DNA of 36,493 nucleotides, from the sequence record NC_034623.1. The stretch is one strand, 5' to 3'. The notes under the pieces were generated by a model. The model worked only from the letters and a program-made list of their open reading frames with translations. It ran no database searches and was not told the DNA's origin. The position numbers and the translations under genes were made by a program. The first letter of the stretch is position 1, and the number at the start of each line of letters is the position of its first letter. Shown here piece after piece: positions 891 through 36,493 of the stretch.

Positions 891-1098
891 TTAGTATATT
901 ATATAATTAGCTAACTACTAATTAGTAGTTTATAATTAATAAATTATAGTCAAACCCAAAATAGGTTTTTTTACGCGATTTCACCGTTACAAAACAATTT
1001 ATCTCTACAGCGTTGAAAGAAATTGGAGATGCAAAGTTGATACGTTCTCTATAGAGAGAGATGGCGATAAGAGAAGAAGAGATAGAAAGATAAAAAGA

Positions 1099-1132
1099 TA
1101 GAGAAAACTTTAAATATGAGTTTAGACATATG
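1099..1132 (+). promoter_or_regulatory. Conserved early/accessory-gene promoter (TAGAGAAAACTTTAAATA class), copy 1
   Basis: tagagaaaactttaaatatgagtttagacatatg upstream of ATG 1151; near-identical copies elsewhere in both arms. Confidence 0.85.
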
Positions 1133-1150
1133 TAAAATTGTGAATGAAAA

Positions 1151-1348
1151 ATGGTAGACACAAAAGTAAAAATAAGCAAGAAACAAGCAAATGAATTAGC
1201 AAAACAGCTTCAACAAGACAAAAATTTTATTCCATACAAAGGCGAAGCCGACTTTTATTATTCTTTTATTGAGAAACAAGGAAAAGTTCATATAAAATTG
1301 TACCAATTTGGAAAAGATTTTTATTTAGAAATTACCACATTAAGTTAA
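1151..1348 (+). CDS. Hypothetical 65-aa accessory protein inside the ITR (presumably diploid)
   Basis: ORF directly behind the conserved promoter and followed by a T-tract; its 3' end is mirrored at 36456-36493. Confidence 0.75.
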   Translation: MVDTKVKISKKQANELAKQLQQDKNFIPYKGEADFYYSFIEKQGKVHIKLYQFGKDFYLEITTLS

Positions 1349-1410
1349 TTTTTTAATTGTTATTTTTAATTTCCTATTTTTCTTCTGTTTTATAATTTTT
1401 TATTTTCTGT
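1349..1410 (+). terminator. T-rich archaeal terminator region
   Basis: Multiple oligo-T runs immediately after the stop codon; the same pattern follows most arm ORFs. Confidence 0.55.
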
Positions 1411-1518
1411 AATTATGCTCAATTTTTCTCATATTTGAGATAATATTACTAAATATAGAGAAATCGTATGTTGTATAGCCTAATGATAAAAATAACGAAA
1501 AATAGAGATCTAAAAAAG

Positions 1519-1537
1519 GAGAGAAAAATTTATAAAG
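1519..1537 (+). promoter_or_regulatory. BRE/TATA (gagagaaaaatttataaag) at the inner ITR boundary
   Basis: Lies ~30 bp upstream of ATG 1569; the mirror copy at 36267-36285 is upstream of the 77-aa minus-strand ORF. Confidence 0.75.
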
Positions 1538-1568
1538 GAGGAGAAAGATATGATATAATGGTGAAAAG

Positions 1569-1907
1569 ATGAAACATTTGACTGATGAACGAATCAGTGA
1601 ATTAATAAAACAAGCAATACAAGAAGGAAAAAATGATTCAAGATACTATCTCATAATTAAAGAGTACAAGGGAAGAGATGGGCATGTAAAGATTAGACAA
1701 GTTTATGGCGAATATGAAATGATATTGATGAATATTAATGATGCTGATGATAATACAAGAGAATTTGAATATGCTGTTATTCCCAAGAGTGATACGGTAA
1801 TATTGCTGGTTGAAGAAAGAATTAAATATAATTCACAGAGCCAAAAACATCAAATAGTATACGTTTTCAATTTCTTTACCGGCTGGAAGTCATTAAGTCT
1901 ATATTAA
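1569..1907 (+). CDS. Hypothetical 112-aa accessory protein (candidate anti-defence)
   Basis: Clean ORF with promoter, ggtga SD-like sequence and downstream T-tract; beta-rich with C-terminal YVFNFFTGWK. Confidence 0.8.
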   Translation: MKHLTDERISELIKQAIQEGKNDSRYYLIIKEYKGRDGHVKIRQVYGEYEMILMNINDADDNTREFEYAVIPKSDTVILLVEERIKYNSQSQKHQIVYVFNFFTGWKSLSLY

Positions 1908-2020
1908 GTTAATTGTTTTTTTTATTTTTATTTTTATTATCTTCTATTTTATATTTTCTATTTTGAGATAAAAATTGATAATATAAGATAAAAAAGTAGA
2001 TAGATAGAGAGATAAACGTT

Positions 2021-2054
2021 TAGAGAAAACTTTAAATATAAGTTTAGACATATA
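2021..2054 (+). promoter_or_regulatory. Conserved early promoter, copy 2
   Basis: tagagaaaactttaaatataagtttagacatata. Confidence 0.85.
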
Positions 2055-2068
2055 TATAATTGAGAGTT

Positions 2069-2296
2069 ATGAAGATTCAAATTATTGATGTAAAATTTCA
2101 TGACTTTGAAATAGTTCAACAAATGAACAATTTTGCTTTAGCTAAATGTAATTGTTGTTCAAAGTCAAGATTTGCGGTTTATAAAATTTCAGAAAAAAAT
2201 AGATTTTTTTATTATCATGGATTTGATCAAAAATATGCACAAAAATTATTTTCTTCTCTCGTTTCTCGTTTTAATTCACAACAACAAATTCAATAA
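2069..2296 (+). CDS. Hypothetical 75-aa protein (MKIQIIDVK..., contains CNCC)
   Basis: ORF behind promoter copy 2; ATG 2069 preferred over TTG 2060. Confidence 0.75.
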   Translation: MKIQIIDVKFHDFEIVQQMNNFALAKCNCCSKSRFAVYKISEKNRFFYYHGFDQKYAQKLFSSLVSRFNSQQQIQ

Positions 2297-2505
2297 TTTT
2301 TTTAACTTTTTTCCTTAATTTTATTTTATTTTTATAATTTTATATTTTAACTTCCTATTTTTATGTTTATTATCTTCTATTTTTATCAATATTTTTTTTC
2401 ATGTTTGGGATAATAATACTAACATTTTAGGAAATTCGTAAATCTAAAATTAAAGATACTTTTAAATTTGTCATATAACGTATGATGATTTGTAGATGAT
2501 AAAAA

Positions 2506-2694
2506 ATGACAAGAGTACATAAATTAACTGCTGAGCAGAAAAAAATTCTAGAAAGAATGAGAAATAGGATAAATTATATTATTGAAACTTATAGTGAGTA
2601 TTTGAATGCATTATCTGAATTTGATAGAACTGGTGTATTAAAAATTCATGGGAAAGTCATTTATGAAAGAAAGTATAATGATCATGAAAATTAA
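2506..2694 (+). CDS. Conserved small 62-aa rudi-/lipothrixvirus-type protein
   Basis: The motif L(S/A)EFDRTGVLKIHGKV resembles a ~62-aa family I recall from SIRVs; TATA+GTC promoter (tttaaatttgtc 2461-2472). Confidence 0.75.
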   Translation: MTRVHKLTAEQKKILERMRNRINYIIETYSEYLNALSEFDRTGVLKIHGKVIYERKYNDHEN

Positions 2695-2730
2695 CATAAT
2701 TGTAAGTCGAAAAATGAAGACATGAAAAGA

Positions 2731-2764
2731 TAGAGAAAACTTTAAATACTTTTGAAGACAGATG
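2731..2764 (+). promoter_or_regulatory. Conserved early promoter, copy 3
   Basis: tagagaaaactttaaatacttttgaagacagatg, followed by a leader similar to copy 1 (taaaaatagtgaataaaaaatg). Confidence 0.85.
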
Positions 2765-2783
2765 TAAAAATAGTGAATAAAAA

Positions 2784-3062
2784 ATGAATGCATTCGAAAT
2801 CTTGCAAAAAGCAAAAGAAAAAGGAGAAGTTTTTTTAGTTTCACTTACGCCTGAAGAGTTGAAAAGTACAGGATTTGAAGAAGAAAAAGAATTTTTTAAT
2901 TTTCAGTTTGTAGATATTTTTTTAATATATGACAACGGTTACAAGCTAAAATATATTTTTGATGGAGATAATAGCAATTTCCTATATGAAAGTGAAAAAG
3001 ATGTTGGCGGATATATATATTTTTTGGAAGTAATTAATGCGTATCTTAATGCAAGTAAATAA
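2784..3062 (+). CDS. Hypothetical acidic 92-aa protein (candidate anti-defence)
   Basis: ORF behind promoter copy 3; rich in E/D and aromatic residues. Confidence 0.8.
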   Translation: MNAFEILQKAKEKGEVFLVSLTPEELKSTGFEEEKEFFNFQFVDIFLIYDNGYKLKYIFDGDNSNFLYESEKDVGGYIYFLEVINAYLNASK

Positions 3063-3180
3063 TTTTTTAAGTTATTTTTTTTATTGATTATTTTTCTCAG
3101 ATTCATTTTAATATTTCAGGATTAACATTTATTAAGAGAAACATAAATATGTCATAAATATAAAAGAAAATCGATATATT

Positions 3181-3705
3181 ATGAATATAGTTTTAAGAGA
3201 ATTTGATAAAGAAAAATTTAATATAAATATCACTGCATGGTTAGATATTGATAATGATATTCAAAGTTGTTATACAAATTTTAAAGAAATTACGATAGTT
3301 ACAATAATTCAAATGATTTCTGAAATTGTAGAAAAAGATGGCTGGGATTTACAATATTTTGAGAAAGATGAAGAAGAAAAATTATTTAATGCATTTATGA
3401 AAAATTCTAAAATTACAGTAAGATTAAATAAAAAGATAGATGAATTAAATTATGTTTTTGAAGAAACTATTGTTGAATTTGATTTTCCAGAAATTGAGAA
3501 AAAGAGAATTGCGGAAATATATTTGAGTAATATACTTAATAATCTTTATTATTTTGATGAATGTATTATTTATAATTTAGATGAAGGAGATATTAATTTA
3601 ATACCAGAAGTTTTAAGTGATGAAGTTTATCAATTATTAAGTCCTGATGAAATAAAGGGAAAATTTAAGGAAAAGATAGAGAAAATTATTAGTGACAAAG
3701 AATAA
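3181..3705 (+). CDS. Hypothetical strongly acidic 174-aa protein
   Basis: Long ORF with TATA+GTC (ataaatatgtc ~3143-3153); very D/E rich. Confidence 0.8.
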   Translation: MNIVLREFDKEKFNINITAWLDIDNDIQSCYTNFKEITIVTIIQMISEIVEKDGWDLQYFEKDEEEKLFNAFMKNSKITVRLNKKIDELNYVFEETIVEFDFPEIEKKRIAEIYLSNILNNLYYFDECIIYNLDEGDINLIPEVLSDEVYQLLSPDEIKGKFKEKIEKIISDKE

Positions 3706-3720
3706 ATATGGTGCAGAAAT

Positions 3721-3882
3721 ATGAATTTAAATGCTCCATTGGATCCAATATGGCTTTTGGTTATTGTTGGAATTTTTTATGAATTATTATTTATCTTTTT
3801 CTTATTGGAATTAAGACAGATAATGAAACGAATTGAAGAAGAAGAATTAGTCAGAATGTTAAAAAAGAAATATAAAAATTAA
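3721..3882 (+). CDS. 53-aa single-pass membrane protein (MNLNAPLDPIWLLVIVGIFYELLFIFFLLELRQ...)
   Basis: Translated by hand; 15 bp after the previous stop with a ggtg SD-like motif; one hydrophobic segment plus a charged tail. Confidence 0.6.
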   Translation: MNLNAPLDPIWLLVIVGIFYELLFIFFLLELRQIMKRIEEEELVRMLKKKYKN

Positions 3883-3928
3883 ATAAATTTTCACTAAAAA
3901 CATGGCGTAAGCTACAAAGATAAAAGTT

Positions 3929-3962
3929 TAGAGAAAACTTTAAATATAAGTTTTTACATATG
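3929..3962 (+). promoter_or_regulatory. Conserved early promoter, copy 4
   Basis: tagagaaaactttaaatataagtttttacatatg. Confidence 0.85.
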
Positions 3963-3981
3963 TTATATTGGTGATAAAAAG

Positions 3982-4149
3982 ATGAAAGTCGTACAAGTTC
4001 AAAACACAAGATATTTCATTCAAGACAAAGATGATTTAATAAGCGTAACTCATGAGTTGGCAAGGCAAGGCTATAGTATAAGTCAAATAGCTCAAGTGTT
4101 AGGAATAAGTGAACGACAAGTAAGAAAGTATTTGGAAGATTGTTGGTAA
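3982..4149 (+). CDS. 55-aa HTH protein, homolog of SIRV1 ORF56a / SIRV2 gp1
   Basis: Translated by hand: MKVVQVQNTRYFIQDKDDLISVTHELARQGYSISQIAQVLGISERQVRKYLEDCW. It has a classic HTH (SQIAQVLGISERQVRKYL) and closely matches my recollection of SIRV ORF56a. Confidence 0.88.
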   Translation: MKVVQVQNTRYFIQDKDDLISVTHELARQGYSISQIAQVLGISERQVRKYLEDCW

Positions 4150-4353
4150 GCTAATTCTTTTTTTAATTTTCAATTTTCTCTTTTTCTTTTATTTTTATAT
4201 TTATATTTTTGTTGTCTTTGTTTTCTATCTTTATCAATAATTTTTCTCAAATTTCAAATAATAATTCTACTAGTTTAAGAAGTTTATAAACCGAAAAATA
4301 AAAAAAGTTATATATTTGTCATATCTAGTTAGTTGTTTTTTGGAGGAAAGAAA

Positions 4354-4806
4354 ATGAGTGAAAATAACCTTATAAATGAGATAATTAACAGTTTGGAAGT
4401 TTTAAAACAACAAATTGATGAAATTAAGACAAAATTAATATCTACAAATCATGACAAAGATATAGAAAATGTTTTTGAAAAATTAAGAAAAATTGCAGAT
4501 GATCATTTAATTAATGCTATAATTTTTGTTTCAAACAGTGAAGTAAAATATATTGCAATTCGTTCAGATAGCACTGGATATAAAACTCTTGTCATTTTAA
4601 ATAATAAGGCATATTATTTCTATGAATATTCAATTATCAAAGGAAGATTACAATTAAGATATTTCAAAGAATATGATATTCCAGAAGATATTATAAAAAT
4701 ATTAGAGAAATTGCCAGAGTCGAATATTGATTATGCAGAACCGAGATATTTCAAATTATATTATATTTTGAAAAAACATTATTCAATAGATTTAATTAAA
4801 GAGTAA
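4354..4806 (+). CDS. ~150-aa accessory protein with N-terminal coiled coil, paralog of 34294-34758
   Basis: ggagg SD before ATG 4354; shares FEKLR, IIFV, VKYIA, KAY, EYxIPEDII and PxYFKxYYxLKKxY with the right-arm ORF. Confidence 0.85.
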   Translation: MSENNLINEIINSLEVLKQQIDEIKTKLISTNHDKDIENVFEKLRKIADDHLINAIIFVSNSEVKYIAIRSDSTGYKTLVILNNKAYYFYEYSIIKGRLQLRYFKEYDIPEDIIKILEKLPESNIDYAEPRYFKLYYILKKHYSIDLIKE

Positions 4807-5024
4807 TGTCAATTTTATCTTTCTTTTTTATTTTTCGATTTTTTCATTTTTTACGTAACATTTTTCTGCTTCTTATTTTGATGTTTTGCCAAAATAAAGT
4901 TAATTTTTTTCTTTTTTAGTTTTAACTTTCTATTTTTTATTTTTATGTTCCATTTTTTTCACTTTTGATATATTATTTCTAAACTGGAGAAATTAAAAAA
5001 GCGTAAGATAGAAACGTAAAACTG

Positions 5025-5056
5025 TAGAGAAAACTTTATATATAAGTTTTTACATA
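5025..5056 (+). promoter_or_regulatory. Conserved early promoter, copy 5
   Basis: tagagaaaactttatatataagtttttacata. Confidence 0.85.
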
Positions 5057-5074
5057 ATAGATATTAGTGATAAA

Positions 5075-5323
5075 ATGAGTCAAGTAGAAAAGCAAAAAGT
5101 TAAATTAGGTAAAAAAGAAAAAGCGGTTTTAGATTTTTTGAAATCGTATCCTCAAGGAATATGGAAAGATGAGGTTATTAGACATTTTTCATGGGCATCA
5201 AGATATGACTCTGTAATGAGTAAACGTTTGCACAATCTGCAGAAAAAAGGATTAATAGTGATAAAAGCAGAAGTTAATCCTTCCTCTGGAAGGTCAAAAC
5301 AAAGAGTATATTTAAAACAATAA
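5075..5323 (+). CDS. 82-aa winged-helix DNA-binding protein (paralog of 32954-33202); candidate Aca-like regulator
   Basis: wHTH pattern LGKKEKAVLDFL...RLHNLQKKGLIVIK...GRSKQRVYL. Confidence 0.8.
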   Translation: MSQVEKQKVKLGKKEKAVLDFLKSYPQGIWKDEVIRHFSWASRYDSVMSKRLHNLQKKGLIVIKAEVNPSSGRSKQRVYLKQ

Positions 5324-5356
5324 TTTTTTTCTTTAAGCTTTTTCTTTTTTTTAGTT

Positions 5357-5548
5357 TTATTTTAGTTCTCTAATTAAATTTTCTATCTCACCTATTATAT
5401 CTTCTATTTCTTCAATTTTTGCTTTTTCAAAATTATGTTCTTCATAATTTTCAATAAGTTTCATAATTTCTTCTAATTTTTCTTTTGCATTTTGCAATTC
5501 TTTTATTGCATCTTCAAGATCTGATATTATTTCATCATAATCTATCAT
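5357..5548 (-). CDS. 63-aa acidic coiled-coil protein
   Basis: Heptad pattern; last gene of the minus-strand replication operon (3-bp gap to the upstream ORF). Confidence 0.75.
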   Translation of the reverse strand: MIDYDEIISDLEDAIKELQNAKEKLEEIMKLIENYEEHNFEKAKIEEIEDIIGEIENLIRELK

Positions 5549-5551
5549 TTT

Positions 5552-5818
5552 TTACACCTCTTTTATAATTTTTGAAACTTTTCCAATTGTTACATTTATT
5601 GTATTGCCAAAAGTTGAAAACCAAATTTCAAAATTTAATAGTTTATTATCAATTTCTAAATAACCAGCAATTTTATTTTTATTTTTTGTATAAAATATTA
5701 TTCTTGGTTTTTCGTTAAAAATAAAAGCTTTATTTAGTAAATTTAAAATATCTTTTTCATTCATATTTTCAACTTTGTTTTTTATTTTTTCCATTTGTTC
5801 TAAAAATTTTTCACTCAT
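5552..5818 (-). CDS. 88-aa hypothetical protein, distant paralog of 35393-35761
   Basis: Ungapped match DIxNxL..NExPxII..G......K...F to the right-arm ORF; own TATA+GTC upstream. Confidence 0.8.
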   Translation of the reverse strand: MSEKFLEQMEKIKNKVENMNEKDILNLLNKAFIFNEKPRIIFYTKNKNKIAGYLEIDNKLLNFEIWFSTFGNTINVTIGKVSKIIKEV

Positions 5819-14589: not shown

Positions 14590-14666
14590 ACATTTGTTGA
14601 TGAGTACGTAAAGCATGAGCGAAAACTTTTTATATTTCGAAAACCAATATTATCTTGGTGAAAGGA

Positions 14667-15020
14667 ATGAGAAGTCAAAAAACACAAAACAAAAGTCAAA
14701 ACAAGTTACTTTTTTGTAAATTATGTCCTTTTGTAGCCGAATCTTATGAAGAATTAGATCATCACATAAAAATGAGTCATTCTTATGATGATGATATTGA
14801 GGAAGAATTTACGCCAATTTTTGTAGATAAAAAAACCTATGAAAAAATGTTATATAATGATTATTTAAGAATTTGTAAAGGAGGAGGATGTATTATTAGA
14901 CCACAAATTGATTTTGAAGATGACAAAAATGAAGTAAGAAGATTGTACAAAGAATATTGTGAAACTTGTGAATTAAAGAAATTATTACTTTCTGAATTAA
15001 AGCAAAATGGAAAAATGTAA
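14667..15020 (+). CDS. C2H2 zinc-finger protein with additional Cys motifs
   Basis: CKLCPF..LDHHIKMSH plus CKGGGC and CETC. Confidence 0.8.
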   Translation: MRSQKTQNKSQNKLLFCKLCPFVAESYEELDHHIKMSHSYDDDIEEEFTPIFVDKKTYEKMLYNDYLRICKGGGCIIRPQIDFEDDKNEVRRLYKEYCETCELKKLLLSELKQNGKM

Positions 15021-17800: not shown

Positions 17801-17872
17801 ATATCATCAATATAAAAATTTTTATATGACAAATTTAAACATATATATGTCATAATTTTTAAGTTTAATTTG

Positions 17873-18256
17873 ATGAATTTTAGACAATCTGGAAAATATT
17901 ATGAATATAAGACACTTAATTATCTTGAAAAACATGGATACAAAGCTATAAGAATTCCAGTTTCTGGAACTGGAAAACAGCCAATTCCAGATATTATAGC
18001 AACTAAGGATAATACAATTTTTCCAATTGAAGTTAAATCAACTTCACAAAATTATGTTGTAGTTGATAATTTTCAAATTGATAAATTGTTTAAGTTCTGT
18101 GAGATATTCAATTTTTGTAATTGTAAACCGTTAATACTAGTTCATTATAAAAAATATAAAAATGTCATAATATATAATTTGAGTCAAGATGTCAGAACAA
18201 AAGAAAAAATCAAATTTACCTTCAGAGCTAACAGCAAAACTGTATTTAGCACTTGA
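17873..18256 (+). CDS. hjc: Holliday junction resolvase (archaeal Hjc family)
   Basis: GKYYEYKT, RIPVSG, PDIIA, IEVKST. Confidence 0.95.
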   Translation: MNFRQSGKYYEYKTLNYLEKHGYKAIRIPVSGTGKQPIPDIIATKDNTIFPIEVKSTSQNYVVVDNFQIDKLFKFCEIFNFCNCKPLILVHYKKYKNVIIYNLSQDVRTKEKIKFTFRANSKTVFST

Positions 18257-32953: not shown

Positions 32954-33202
32954 ATGACTGAATCACAAGGTAGAAAAATTAGATTAGGAAGAAAAGAAAA
33001 AGAATTATTAGATTTTTTAAAAAATTATCAAGACGGAATTTGGAGAGATGAATTAATAAAACATTTTGTTCATAATACTGATTATTATGACTTTTTTATG
33101 GACAGATTGTATAATTTGAAGCAAAAAGGACTTATAGAAATAAAAAAGGTAACAAATCCAGAAACTGGAAGAAAAAAATTACGTGTTTATTTGAAACAAT
33201 GA
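32954..33202 (+). CDS. 82-aa winged-helix protein (paralog of 5075-5323)
   Basis: LGRKEKELLDFLK..GIWRDE..RLYNLKQKGLIEIK..GRKKLRVYLKQ; colinear with the left copy. Confidence 0.8.
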   Translation: MTESQGRKIRLGRKEKELLDFLKNYQDGIWRDELIKHFVHNTDYYDFFMDRLYNLKQKGLIEIKKVTNPETGRKKLRVYLKQ

Positions 33203-33481: not shown

Positions 33482-34204
33482 TTAATCAACTTTATTTTTC
33501 TTAGGTCTTGGATGCGTAATTAAATAATATTTATTTCCGCTTAGCATAACTGAATTTTCTCCATGATCTGCTGATTTCATAACAAATGTTGTAGAATTTT
33601 GAAGATATACTAAAAACGTAGTACCAGGTGTTGAAAATAAATCGGTAGCTAATACAGTATTTGAAAATTGTATTTCATGATTATAAATTGTCAAACTGTT
33701 TACATGATTGAGACTAAGATTTAATTCGCTATTTGGCGATGGAACTTCATAGATCTCCAAATTGCCTTGATTAAACGTTAGATTAAATTGATATAATTGA
33801 CCTTTTATGAAATAATCATAAATTTCTATTGCATAATTAGTATAAGAAATTAATAATTCTTTAGAACTAAGATTTAAAAGCTCTAGTTCTTTTAATATAA
33901 TGTTTTTCATATCCTCTAAACTTCTTGTAATTTTATTTCTTCTATAAATTGAAATTATTGATGGAGCAGGCGTATAATATATGCCTTTAACTTCTTCTAA
34001 TTGACAATCATTATTTCTAAAACAACCATTAAATGTCATACCGCTTCTTGAAACATATTTAGAACAATTTACATAATGATTTGAAATTAACGAAATTTTT
34101 GTAACTTGACCATTTGAATGTTTCAACATAAAAACGATTGGCAAATGAATTATTTGTTTTAAAATTTTTACTTCATATTTTTTTTGATCTTCAACTTGGG
34201 ACAT
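33482..34204 (-). CDS. acrIIIB1: AcrIIIB1-like type III-B anti-CRISPR (SIRV2 gp48/ORF249-like)
   Basis: ~240 aa in the right accessory arm; QGNL...SADHG...YYLITHPRP C-terminal domain. Assigned from recalled size, position and sequence; needs an alignment. Confidence 0.68.
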   Translation of the reverse strand: MSQVEDQKKYEVKILKQIIHLPIVFMLKHSNGQVTKISLISNHYVNCSKYVSRSGMTFNGCFRNNDCQLEEVKGIYYTPAPSIISIYRRNKITRSLEDMKNIILKELELLNLSSKELLISYTNYAIEIYDYFIKGQLYQFNLTFNQGNLEIYEVPSPNSELNLSLNHVNSLTIYNHEIQFSNTVLATDLFSTPGTTFLVYLQNSTTFVMKSADHGENSVMLSGNKYYLITHPRPKKNKVD

Positions 34205-34293
34205 ACGACCTGACACCTGCAAATGAAAATATGCTATATGACAAATATAAAAATATCTTGAGTTTTCGATTTATAAAAAAGAAAAAAATAATA

Positions 34294-34758
34294 TCAAACT
34301 TTGACAAATTCGATTTTATAATTTTTCTTCAAAAGATAATATACTTTAAAATAGACAGGATCGACATGACTGACAATAGACTCTGGTATCATCTTCAACA
34401 AAACAATAATATCTTCTGGAATATTATATTCATTACCATAATATATAATTATTTTATTTTCTTTAGTTTCAAATCTATACCAAGAATACGCTTTTCTATA
34501 ATCTATAACATAATTATGAGATCCATTATTCCACTCATCATATGCAATATATTTTACGCCATCATCATTAACAAAAATTATAGAACCAACATATCGATAA
34601 TTTACGGTATTTCTTAATTTTTCAAATAGATATTCCTTTAACTCTCTATAATTGGCTTTTTGCATTTCATCCCATAACTGAATAATTTCATATCTTAAAA
34701 TCTCTAATTGATTTATTATTTGATTTATTTTCTCTAATTGTTGATCAAATTTATTCAT
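34294..34758 (-). CDS. 154-aa accessory protein, paralog of 4354-4806
   Basis: Shared motifs as listed for the left copy; ggtga SD and TATA+GTC upstream. Confidence 0.85.
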   Translation of the reverse strand: MNKFDQQLEKINQIINQLEILRYEIIQLWDEMQKANYRELKEYLFEKLRNTVNYRYVGSIIFVNDDGVKYIAYDEWNNGSHNYVIDYRKAYSWYRFETKENKIIIYYGNEYNIPEDIIVLLKMIPESIVSHVDPVYFKVYYLLKKNYKIEFVKV

Positions 34759-34935
34759 TTTCGCTTCTCACCAAATCAATTTGTGAGTTATGACAAATTT
34801 AAAACTTTCTTTATCTTTCGATTTATGAATTTCTTAAAATATTAGTATTAATATTACAAACATAAGAAAAATCAAGCATGGAGAAAGAAAACAAAAAACA
34901 AAAAAATAAAAAATAAAGAATACGAAAGAAAAAAA

Positions 34936-35250
34936 TTAGTATATATTCCAAATTAATAAAGCAATTAACTTTAATATTTCTTCCCTTGTACCCTCTGCTA
35001 TCTTCTGATTATTTACCTCTTTGTAAACCTTATAAAGTCTTGCAATTTTTTGTAGCGTCTTAACAAAATCAATATCTTCTGGATTTAAATAAGTAAAGCT
35101 AATTTCATTTTTCGTATCATTTACTACGACATATAGCTTTGAATATTCTATATGTCTTCCCTTAACTTGTTCTAACTGAATCAAAAAACTAATATTAACT
35201 TGTCCTTCCAACTTTTCTTTAAACGAATTTTGACTTTTTTCTTCCGCCAT
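34936..35250 (-). CDS. Hypothetical 104-aa accessory protein (candidate anti-defence)
   Basis: Directly behind a near-exact copy of the promoter and leader found at 1099-1150. Confidence 0.8.
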   Translation of the reverse strand: MAEEKSQNSFKEKLEGQVNISFLIQLEQVKGRHIEYSKLYVVVNDTKNEISFTYLNPEDIDFVKTLQKIARLYKVYKEVNNQKIAEGTREEILKLIALLIWNIY

Positions 35251-35301
35251 TTTTATTCACAATTTTACATATGCATAAACTCATATTTAAATCTTTCTCT
35301 A
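35251..35301 (-). promoter_or_regulatory. Conserved early promoter plus leader, copy 6
   Basis: Minus strand tagagaaagatttaaatatgagtttatgcatatgtaaaattgtgaataaaa, versus copy 1 tagagaaaactttaaatatgagtttagacatatgtaaaattgtgaatgaaaa. Confidence 0.88.
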
Positions 35302-35354
35302 TCTCTTTACTTCTTTATCTTTCATTTTTTTTATCTTCAACTTCTACAAATCTG

Positions 35355-35372
35355 TAGAAAACTTTAAATATC
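35355..35372 (+). promoter_or_regulatory. Early-type promoter, copy 7 (divergent from copy 6)
   Basis: tagaaaactttaaatatc upstream of ORF 35393. Confidence 0.75.
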
Positions 35373-35392: not shown

Positions 35393-35761
35393 GTGAGTCA
35401 AATGAAAACACAAGAAAAAAACGAATGGTTGGAAAATACAAAGTACATAGTTAGAAAAATAAGCAAAACAGACATTAGAAATACATTAATGTTTTTTTAC
35501 GAGATGAATGAAGTACCTGAAATAATAATATTAAATAGAGGAAATATACATTTAGAAGGCTTCATAAAATTAAGCAAGAAAATATTTAAATTTGATTTGA
35601 TATTTTTAAGAAAAGAAGAAAAAACCATATTAAGAGTATCATTACAATATGGAAAAGAAAAACTTGAGAAATCTGAAGAAATTTTTATTATAGAATATAA
35701 TGACAGTCTTGAAATACAGCTTGCCGAAACTAAACAATATTTGTTTAGTGTATACTTCTAA
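35393..35761 (+). CDS. ~120-aa accessory protein, distant paralog of 5552-5818
   Basis: See the paralog alignment; start GTG 35393 or ATG 35402. Confidence 0.8.
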   Translation: MSQMKTQEKNEWLENTKYIVRKISKTDIRNTLMFFYEMNEVPEIIILNRGNIHLEGFIKLSKKIFKFDLIFLRKEEKTILRVSLQYGKEKLEKSEEIFIIEYNDSLEIQLAETKQYLFSVYF

Positions 35762-36008: not shown

Positions 36009-36242
36009 TTAATCTATATCTGACAAAAGGAAATACTTTAAACCGTCACGTTTAGCTTTTATTAAAGATGTTTTTCCTATTTCTTTAGCTTTCTTGCCAA
36101 CTACAACTTTCCAATAATAATGTTCACAATTGTGATAACTTGCTAAATATCCATCTATCCTTCTTTCGCCTAGTTTCTTATTGCAAAGTAAACATATATA
36201 TACTTCCCATCTTCCGATTATATATTTTTGTATCATTTTCAC
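36009..36242 (-). CDS. 77-aa putative zinc-binding protein
   Basis: CLLC..HNCEH; driven by the ITR-boundary promoter. Confidence 0.75.
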   Translation of the reverse strand: MKMIQKYIIGRWEVYICLLCNKKLGERRIDGYLASYHNCEHYYWKVVVGKKAKEIGKTSLIKAKRDGLKYFLLSDID

Positions 36243-36261
36243 TCACATATAATTTTGCATG

Positions 36262-36493
36262 TCCTCCTTTATAAATTTTTCTCTCCTTTTTTAGATCTCT
36301 ATTTTTCGTTATTTTTATCATTAGGCTATACAACATACGATTTCTCTATATTTAGTAATATTATCTCAAATATGAGAAAAATTGAGCATAATTACAGAAA
36401 ATAAAAAATTATAAAACAGAAGAAAAATAGGAAATTAAAAATAACAATTAAAAAATTAACTTAATGTGGTAATTTCTAAATAAAAATCTTTTC
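36262..36493. repeat. Right inverted terminal repeat (truncated by the window/assembly end)
   Basis: Reverse complement of 1311-1542. Confidence 0.95.

Follow-up and report, generated by a model that had tools for sequence, protein, structure and literature searches.

The two arms of the linear genome of the rudivirus SIRV8 probably carry a regulon of mostly monocistronic early accessory units, headed by copies of a common archaeal promoter, and most of their cargo is presumed to act against host defence. The window analysed is the whole SIRV8 stretch, 36,493 bases long with a G+C content of 22-30% across its length, and the finding concerns its left arm. It is 100% identical to the record KY744229.1 / NC_034623.1 in both of the pieces searched (1000-5400 and 11000-33000), with an equal record length. 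The organisation into promoters and cassettes is real, strongly non-random and ordinary for rudiviruses, while the functional reading is reasonable and rests on SIRV2 by homology.

The repeated element is centred on an 18-mer core, TAGAGAAAACTTTAWATA, which occurs exactly at 1099, 2021, 2731, 3929 and 5025 on the plus strand and, with two mismatches, at 35301 (-) and 35353 (+). In these sites a purine-rich TFB-recognition element (BRE) sits directly upstream of a TATA box, TTTAWATA (five exact sites and two more at two mismatches). Six of the seven copies share in alignment a longer block, approximately GATA.AAA.(G/A)TAAAA..TAGAGAAAACTTTAAATAT.AGTTT..ACATATGT....TTGGTGA, after which the start codon follows. 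Every one of these promoters, here called class 1, is found either in the first 5.3 kb or in the last 1.3 kb of the record. With a genome so rich in A+T, and with the 18-mer core occurring also on unrelated contigs of the IMG/VR database, random repetition of A/T-rich words at 25% G+C had to be considered, but it is refuted by shuffling and retains practically no credibility. At up to three mismatches the core gave 11 matches against 1.29 expected, while the maximum in 100 shuffles was four and none reached 11; moreover, the positions of the copies are fixed relative to genes.

A position weight matrix (PWM) of 51 nt was built from the six full copies and scored leave-one-out against 100 random genomes of matched composition, yielding 31-62 bits for the six copies and a maximum of 13.1 bits for the random genomes. 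Copy 1 (1087..1137, +), with BRE TAGAGAAAAC, TATA box TTTAAATA and both flanks, scores 66.6 bits, or 61.5 bits leave-one-out. Copy 2 (2009..2059, +) reaches 60.6 bits and copy 3 (2719..2769, +), in which the downstream element is divergent (TTTGAAGACAGATG), 55.2 bits, or 32.5 bits leave-one-out. Copy 4 (3917..3967, +), which heads gp09, copy 5 (5013..5063, +) and copy 6 (35263..35313, -), which stands back to back with the promoter of gp59, score 59.7, 51.5 and 59.2 bits, respectively. A sequence-only reading of this DNA had pointed to a shared motif at the five left-arm positions and had proposed such a matrix scan; the exact cores, far above shuffles, and the scores of the six sites bear it out. 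It had also seen two mirrored copies on the right arm, and here the site at 35301 proved to be a full copy whereas that at 35353..35370 (+) is not near-identical to the others, consisting of the BRE/TATA core only (TGTAGAAAACTTTAAATA), with flanks that are not shared, a score of -15.5 bits with the 51-nt PWM and a distance to its ATG that matches the other copies. Its placing of the open reading frame (ORF) at 1569 behind a near-identical copy was mistaken, and the promoter there is a weak variant (GAGAGAAAAATTTATAAA) with three mismatches at 1507..1557 (+), scoring 11.3 bits with the 51-nt PWM and 30.8 bits with a 70-nt PWM (random maximum 0.2). This variant, with its core at 1519, is part of the terminal inverted repeat (ITR), and its mirror at 36285 (-) precedes gp60; judged by the PWM scores, both sites are borderline with respect to sharing the regulatory sequence.

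What follows the promoter is equally regular. Counting from the motif's first T, the ATG is located at +48 to +53 in SIRV8 and in every relative examined, with a GTGA or GGTGA motif 7-10 nt ahead of it, and each class-1 copy is followed by one ORF and then an oligo-T tract, as the sequence-only reading had described, indicating single genes and not operons. A run of at least six T residues starts 0-17 nt past the stop codons of gp01, gp03, gp04, gp06, gp09, gp11, gp58, gp59 and gp60, with 65-80% T over the next 40 nt after these nine genes. In Sulfolobus, oligo-T stops RNA polymerase and TATA boxes have their centre at about -26, from which monocistronic transcripts with leaders of some 12-15 nt are predicted. 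A scan of 900-5600 for bacterial sigma-70 promoters and hairpin terminators revealed no enrichment (42 promoters against 37.8 expected) and 0 terminators, which is what an archaeal virus should show. The results support the assignment of the class-1 repeats as archaeal BRE/TATA promoters heading single-gene units.

The SIRV8-derived PWM detects 6-10 sites per genome in SIRV2, from Iceland, and in SIRV9, SIRV10, SIRV4, V3, V60 and V65. In SIRV2 these sites head aca8 (gp01/gp54), the AcrID1 paralogues gp02, gp03, gp05, gp08, gp52 and gp53, and also gp07 and gp47 (AcrIA3). The cargo proteins form families of 5-9 members each with 54-87% identity, and a given family may occupy the left arm of one virus and the right arm of another. 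The promoters of unrelated SIRV8 cassettes are 80% identical and those of orthologous cassettes of different viruses 81%, compared with 76% for the coding DNA of the orthologous cassettes. A consensus of 45 distinct sites from the seven rudiviruses is organised in discrete blocks of high information. The motif and its statistics, the spacing, the terminators, the conservation in seven relatives and the gene identities are all matters of direct observation. The exact 18-mer turned up in 30 stretches of the IMG/VR database. Only rudivirus-like contigs, with a G+C content of 0.23-0.29, have the full motif, and the other contigs match the 18-mer core only; therefore the core alone is not diagnostic.

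These comparisons also bear on whether the promoter similarity could be a by-product of recent duplication, gene conversion or terminal-repeat recombination, without selection for common regulation. The arms do hold inverted repeats that cover promoter regions, and cassettes shift between arms, but we regard this origin as very improbable because the sequence has been kept between the Icelandic SIRV2 and viruses from Yellowstone ahead of cargo proteins without detectable similarity. Furthermore, the likeness breaks off abruptly at the start codon, promoter and ATG keep a constant distance, and the information peaks at the BRE, the TATA box and the discrete flank blocks, being uneven across the sequence.

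In the mechanism that we favour, each unit begins with a regulatory sequence of about 50 nt in which the purine-rich BRE and a consensus TATA box constitute a very strong host-type promoter. Its conserved flanks comprise GTAAAA on the upstream side and, on the downstream side, AGTTT and ACATA(TG). A GGTGA Shine-Dalgarno-like motif in a short leader then precedes one small gene, which starts at a fixed distance, and the oligo-T tract behind the gene would terminate the archaeal RNA polymerase. By homology with SIRV2, the units would be transcribed immediately after infection and subsequently shut down by Aca8, encoded by gp09, which would also regulate itself because its gene stands behind one of the promoter copies. 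The cargo genes evolve fast and switch arms from one relative to another; they would be the accessory early genes of the virus, mostly presumed to be anti-defence genes together with some regulators (gp09 and gp11). Early timing, Aca8 binding and anti-defence activity are thereby ascribed to SIRV8 by analogy.

The gp09 gene (3982..4149, +) encodes a 55 amino acid (aa) helix-turn-helix (HTH) regulator which is 64% identical to SIRV2 gp01/gp54 and matches Pfam HTH_23 with an E-value (E) of 2e-7. Its RefSeq name, terminase small subunit, is a mislabel that stems from a weak resemblance at the level of the HTH (Pfam Terminase_5 with E 0.0013, which misses the cut-off). In the 45-site consensus a 7-bp inverted repeat, GTAAAAA-N24-TTTTTAC, brackets the BRE and TATA box, for example at window positions 3920-3957 and 5016-5053, and this sequence pattern is a candidate for the Aca8 operator.

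Much of this framework has been established for SIRV2, in which aca8, acrID1 and acrIIIB1 are expressed immediately after infection and most small terminal genes have in common a conserved regulatory sequence that includes a strong BRE/TATA (Bhoobalan-Chitty et al. 2024, Nat Commun 15:3699, PMC11065993). From this regulatory sequence the authors predicted anti-defence genes (ADGs) in 17 aca8-carrying rudiviruses, SIRV8 explicitly included (PMC11065993). The main sheet of their Supplementary Data 1 lists, for SIRV8, gp09 as Aca8, gp58 as ADG.01, gp11 as ADG.02, gp03 as ADG.05, gp06 as ADG.07, gp04 as ADG.08, gp01 as ADG.10, gp60 as ADG.12 and gp59 as ADG.21, and a low-probability sheet adds gp56 as AcrIIIB1, gp35 as ADG.04, gp05 as ADG.17 (viral antitoxin) and gp57 as ADG.18 (PMC11065993). 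The sequence-only reading was thus accurate in recalling that anti-defence genes of archaeal viruses share strong early promoters, and the six ORFs which it named as prime candidates for anti-CRISPR (Acr) or anti-toxin proteins are the same genes predicted in that study (ADG.10,.05,.08,.07,.01 and.21). Consequently, neither the promoter-based anti-defence idea nor its application to SIRV8 is new, and Acr is not the only way to read them, given that the model of gp58 has the A100 fold and that gp59, with a core promoter only, is a paralogue of a conserved gene (see below). We found no report testing the SIRV8 candidates in a literature search, and a 2026 paper still terms the regulation by Aca8 'predicted'.

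The left arm is not one uniform array since it contains two classes of promoter. Five class-1 units (gp01, gp04, gp06, gp09 and gp11) and one weak variant (gp03) alternate with three units of a second type, heading gp05, the two genes gp07-gp08, and gp10. The second type carries TTTGTCATA directly after the TATA box, with nine matches in place of 1.2 expected and sites at 2467, 4315, 5851(-), 17040, 17833(-), 32919, 34245(-) and 34797(-). It heads gp05 (2440..2475, +, TTTTAAATTTGTCATA), gp10 (4290..4323, +), gp13, gp39, gp40, gp54, gp56 (34237-34245, -) and gp57 (34789-34797, -), and in alignment a variant heads gp07. This element is the 'GTC motif' of SIRV promoters described by Kessler et al. 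2004, as summarised in PMC5569661; the host activator tied to SIRV promoters is Sta1 (PMC1635249). In comparison with class 1 these promoters have another downstream element and drive core genes too (gp13, gp39 and gp40).

Two genes behind GTC-type promoters have validated relatives. The first, gp05 (2506..2694, +), encodes a 62 aa Phd-like homologue of a viral antitoxin, has no T-tract behind it, and judged by its sequence is the best-supported anti-defence gene in the SIRV8 span. It shares 79% identity over 53 aa with SMV1 gp44 (CF87_gp44), which has been shown experimentally to neutralise the host Doc toxin (PMC11065993). Homologues of gp05 with 66-73% identity are present in four Sulfolobales genomes, and at two of the four host loci a convergent, overlapping gene of 152-154 aa matches Pfam Fic/DOC with E ~1e-9, above the curated cut-off. 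Thus gp05 resembles SMV1 gp44 in sequence and in the convergent overlap of its cellular homologues with Fic/Doc genes, and it differs in that the SMV1 protein is validated whereas gp05 is known from its sequence, lies behind a GTC-type promoter and was placed on the low-probability sheet. A cellular homologue in Sulfolobaceae archaeon RB850M (3001-3213 of locus L010) has no adjacent Fic/Doc gene and may either be an orphan antitoxin or belong to an integrated element. The second, gp56 (33482..34204, -), encodes a protein of 240 aa which, by alignment with SIRV2 gp48, is a full-length AcrIIIB1 homologue of putative activity (39% identity over 254 columns, E 7e-48; phmmer E 4e-40).

Other known inhibitor families were sought in six-frame translations. 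A hidden Markov model (HMM) of nine SIRV2 AcrID1 paralogues gave a best E of 0.03 against the six-frame window, with a control that recovered all paralogues, and no window protein matched DUF1374 in Pfam. Profile-profile comparison with hhalign ranked gp01 best at 17% probability (control SIRV2 gp06, 94.6%); the idea that gp01 could be a shortened AcrID1, which this hint raised, gained no support from a profile search of the PDB, which produced no AcrID1 entry and just a 20-residue lectin match. For AcrIII-1/DUF1874, the best E that phmmer reached in the six-frame window with SIRV2 gp37 as query was 0.17 and blastp found no match, and the slot between the gp41 and gp42 homologues contains no DUF1874 ORF. 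Nor did a six-frame search of SIRV8 reveal a homologue of SIRV2 gp47 (AcrIA3). The sequence-only reading was therefore right to recognise neither AcrID1 (DUF1374) nor AcrIII-1 (DUF1874), and its remark that the virus may use other inhibitors overlooks gp56 and, within its own span, gp05; nor does it tell apart regulators, sites with a core promoter only and the second class of promoter.

Pfam and NCBIfam assign no domain to any of the six named ORFs (0/6), which belong to PHROG families of 'unknown function' throughout; the sole domains that Pfam, PHROGs and NCBIfam yielded among the arm proteins are the HTH of gp09 and a C2H2 domain in gp35. On the left arm, gp01 (1151..1348, +; 65 aa) lies inside the ITR with its T-run beginning at the stop codon, and a word-index homologue search returned itself as the sole match. 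Next, gp03 (1569..1907, +; 112 aa) has relatives in V3 and V60 which stand behind full-motif copies, and gp04 (2069..2296, +; 75 aa) has its T-run at the stop codon. Neither a fold nor a family could be assigned to gp01, gp03 or gp04 by homologue, profile and PDB searches. More can be said of gp06 (2784..3062, +; 92 aa), for which we collected 29 representative homologues with 32-57% identity, several of them, metagenomic relatives included, of about 190 aa with an extra C-terminal domain, in which Pfam found no domain, and one located on a small mobile-element-like contig. AlphaFold2 predicts for gp06 a compact alpha/beta fold with a predicted local distance difference test (pLDDT) score of 94.4, a predicted template modelling (pTM) score of 0.85 and agreement of 5/5 models, and a Foldseek search of the PDB with this model gave no structural match (best E 1.1). 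That gp06/ADG.07 is a new-fold inhibitor of Sulfolobales defence, and GTAAAAA-N24-TTTTTAC the Aca8 operator, is a speculative joint proposal which we consider rather unlikely to hold.

On the right arm, gp58 (34936..35250, -; 104 aa) has 29 homologues, all rudiviral or from hot-spring metagenomes, and its family carries an invariant C-terminal helix motif, REEILKLIALL. The AlphaFold2 model (pLDDT 81.9) is confident in 1/5 models only, and its top Foldseek match is A100 of SSV1 (PDB 4LID; E 3.7e-4, TM 0.65/0.77, root mean square deviation 2.6); with the gp58 profile the top match in the whole PDB was again 4LID, but weak (E 0.12), and fusellovirus proteins are among the matches in BFVD. A review describes A100 as a putative transcription factor of the Pur-alpha-repeat type that has relatives in rudiviruses, and because the model resembles it, gp58 may bind nucleic acid. 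The structure searches proposed in the sequence-only reading thus gave a resemblance to 4LID for gp58 and no significant PDB match for gp06, gp03, gp04 and gp11. The remaining candidate, gp59 (35402..35761, +; 119 aa), is a diverged paralogue (28% identity over 61 aa, E 7e-6) of a gene conserved among rudiviruses, gp13 (5552-5818, -) in SIRV8 and gp20 in SIRV2.

These identities lend some substance to a different interpretation, in which the shared sequence serves host takeover in general by driving early, strong expression, and most of its cargo, rather than being anti-defence, regulates transcription, binds nucleic acids or assists the cell cycle or replication. Both gp09 and gp11 are DNA-binding, the gp58 model matches A100, and gp59 is related to a conserved gene. 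In addition, highly expressed host genes have the same core promoter, and the authors of the ADG predictions admit false positives and mark some families with 'host cell cycle regulation?' (PMC11065993). Against this, validated Acrs of SIRV2 (AcrID1 and gp47/AcrIA3) lie behind the same sequence, the cargo is accessory, variable and fast-evolving, as genes engaged in an arms race should be, and the accessory genes of SIRV2 are dispensable in a CRISPR-deficient host (PMC11065993). We therefore judge a takeover module to be an improbable alternative.

Several points weigh against a mainly anti-defence regulon under Aca8. Behind two of the six full copies lie genes for DNA-binding proteins (gp09 Aca8 and gp11), and as both copies are among the five on the left arm, the cassettes inferred in the sequence-only reading are real but do not form a pure anti-defence pool. 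Part of the cargo may not be anti-defence, considering the A100-like model of gp58 and the paralogy of gp59. The class-1 promoter is neither necessary nor specific for anti-defence genes, because gp05 and gp56 lie behind GTC-type promoters. Early timing has been measured in SIRV2 only, cargo function in SIRV8 is predicted and the binding of Aca8 to the regulatory sequence is proposed. Finally, the dyad signal is modest, with 48% complementary positions against a median of 31%.

Among the neighbouring genes of the left arm, gp07 and gp08 (3181..3882, +) appear to be co-transcribed as a two-gene unit from a GTC-like promoter (ATATGTCATAA near 3150), with no T-tract between or behind the genes; their locus tags are absent from the files of PMC11065993 and they are not listed there as ADGs. 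A long hydrophobic stretch (LLVIVGIFYELLFIFFLL) in the 53 aa gp08 (3721-3882, +) suggests that it may be a small membrane protein. A 150 aa protein encoded by gp10 (4354..4806, +) is a paralogue of gp57 (34294..34758, -; 154 aa) of the ADG.18 family, and gp11 (5075..5323, +; 82 aa) encodes the MarR-like putative regulator of ADG.02, a winged-helix protein for which Pfam and PDB searches gave no significant match and which has a paralogue in gp54 (32954-33202; 52% identity, E 2e-32). Behind the ITR variant at 36285 (-) lies gp60 (36009..36236, -), encoding a Cys-rich protein of 75 aa. In the middle of the genome, a core-promoter copy with three mismatches at 14617 precedes gp35 (14667-15020, +), which carries a C2H2 zinc finger (Pfam E 4e-6). 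A 128 aa ORF at 17870-18256 (+), with 72% identity to the SIRV2 Holliday-junction resolvase (gp35), is unannotated in NC_034623.

The termini also deserve comment. The left terminus opens, at positions 1-58, with an almost perfect palindrome (ACTACAAATACCTA...TAGGTATTTGTAGT), behind which short direct repeats of the kind typical of rudiviral termini extend over about 700 bp. The record is described as a 'partial genome', and its right end at 36262-36493 is an exact inverted copy (100% complementary) of 1311-1542. Since the right end breaks off within a duplicate of the gp01 3' end, the assembly probably lacks some 1.3 kb of right ITR, and with it a mirrored gp01 and its promoter. The annotated genes gp02 (1468-1572, +) and gp61 (36178-36336, -) overlap the ITR promoter variant (1519 / 36285) and the neighbouring gene starts, and they look like spurious ORF calls.

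Few anti-defence proteins of archaeal viruses have been identified, and a common early promoter offers a practical route to more of them. If the candidate operator is genuine, the whole regulon could be switched by one protein of 55 aa. What is new here is small. The model of gp58 has a fold like that of A100, gp06 is confidently predicted to have an orphan fold, gp59 is a paralogue of a conserved gene, two promoter classes alternate, and a dyad brackets the TATA box; these additions could help in choosing which of the candidates (ADG.01,.05,.07,.08,.10 and.21) to test first.

The closest known system is the rudiviral Aca8 regulon described for SIRV2 (PMC11065993), with which SIRV8 shares the BRE/TATA sequence of about 50 nt, a closely similar Aca8, and single-gene units at the genome termini with small unannotated cargo. 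There is no difference in kind, apart from early timing having been measured in SIRV2 only; with respect to cargo, SIRV8 lacks AcrID1 paralogues, gp47/AcrIA3 and DUF1874, and its aca8, unlike that of SIRV2, is single-copy and lies outside the ITR. There is also a resemblance to the acr-aca operons of phages, with Aca1, Aca2 and similar HTH autorepressors, where a strong early promoter drives counter-defence genes and an HTH protein made from the same promoter type is thought to shut the promoter down. In SIRV8, however, the promoter has been copied in front of many monocistronic units on both arms instead of serving one operon, and it is an archaeal BRE/TATA promoter, with termination at oligo-T and predicted repression by Aca8.

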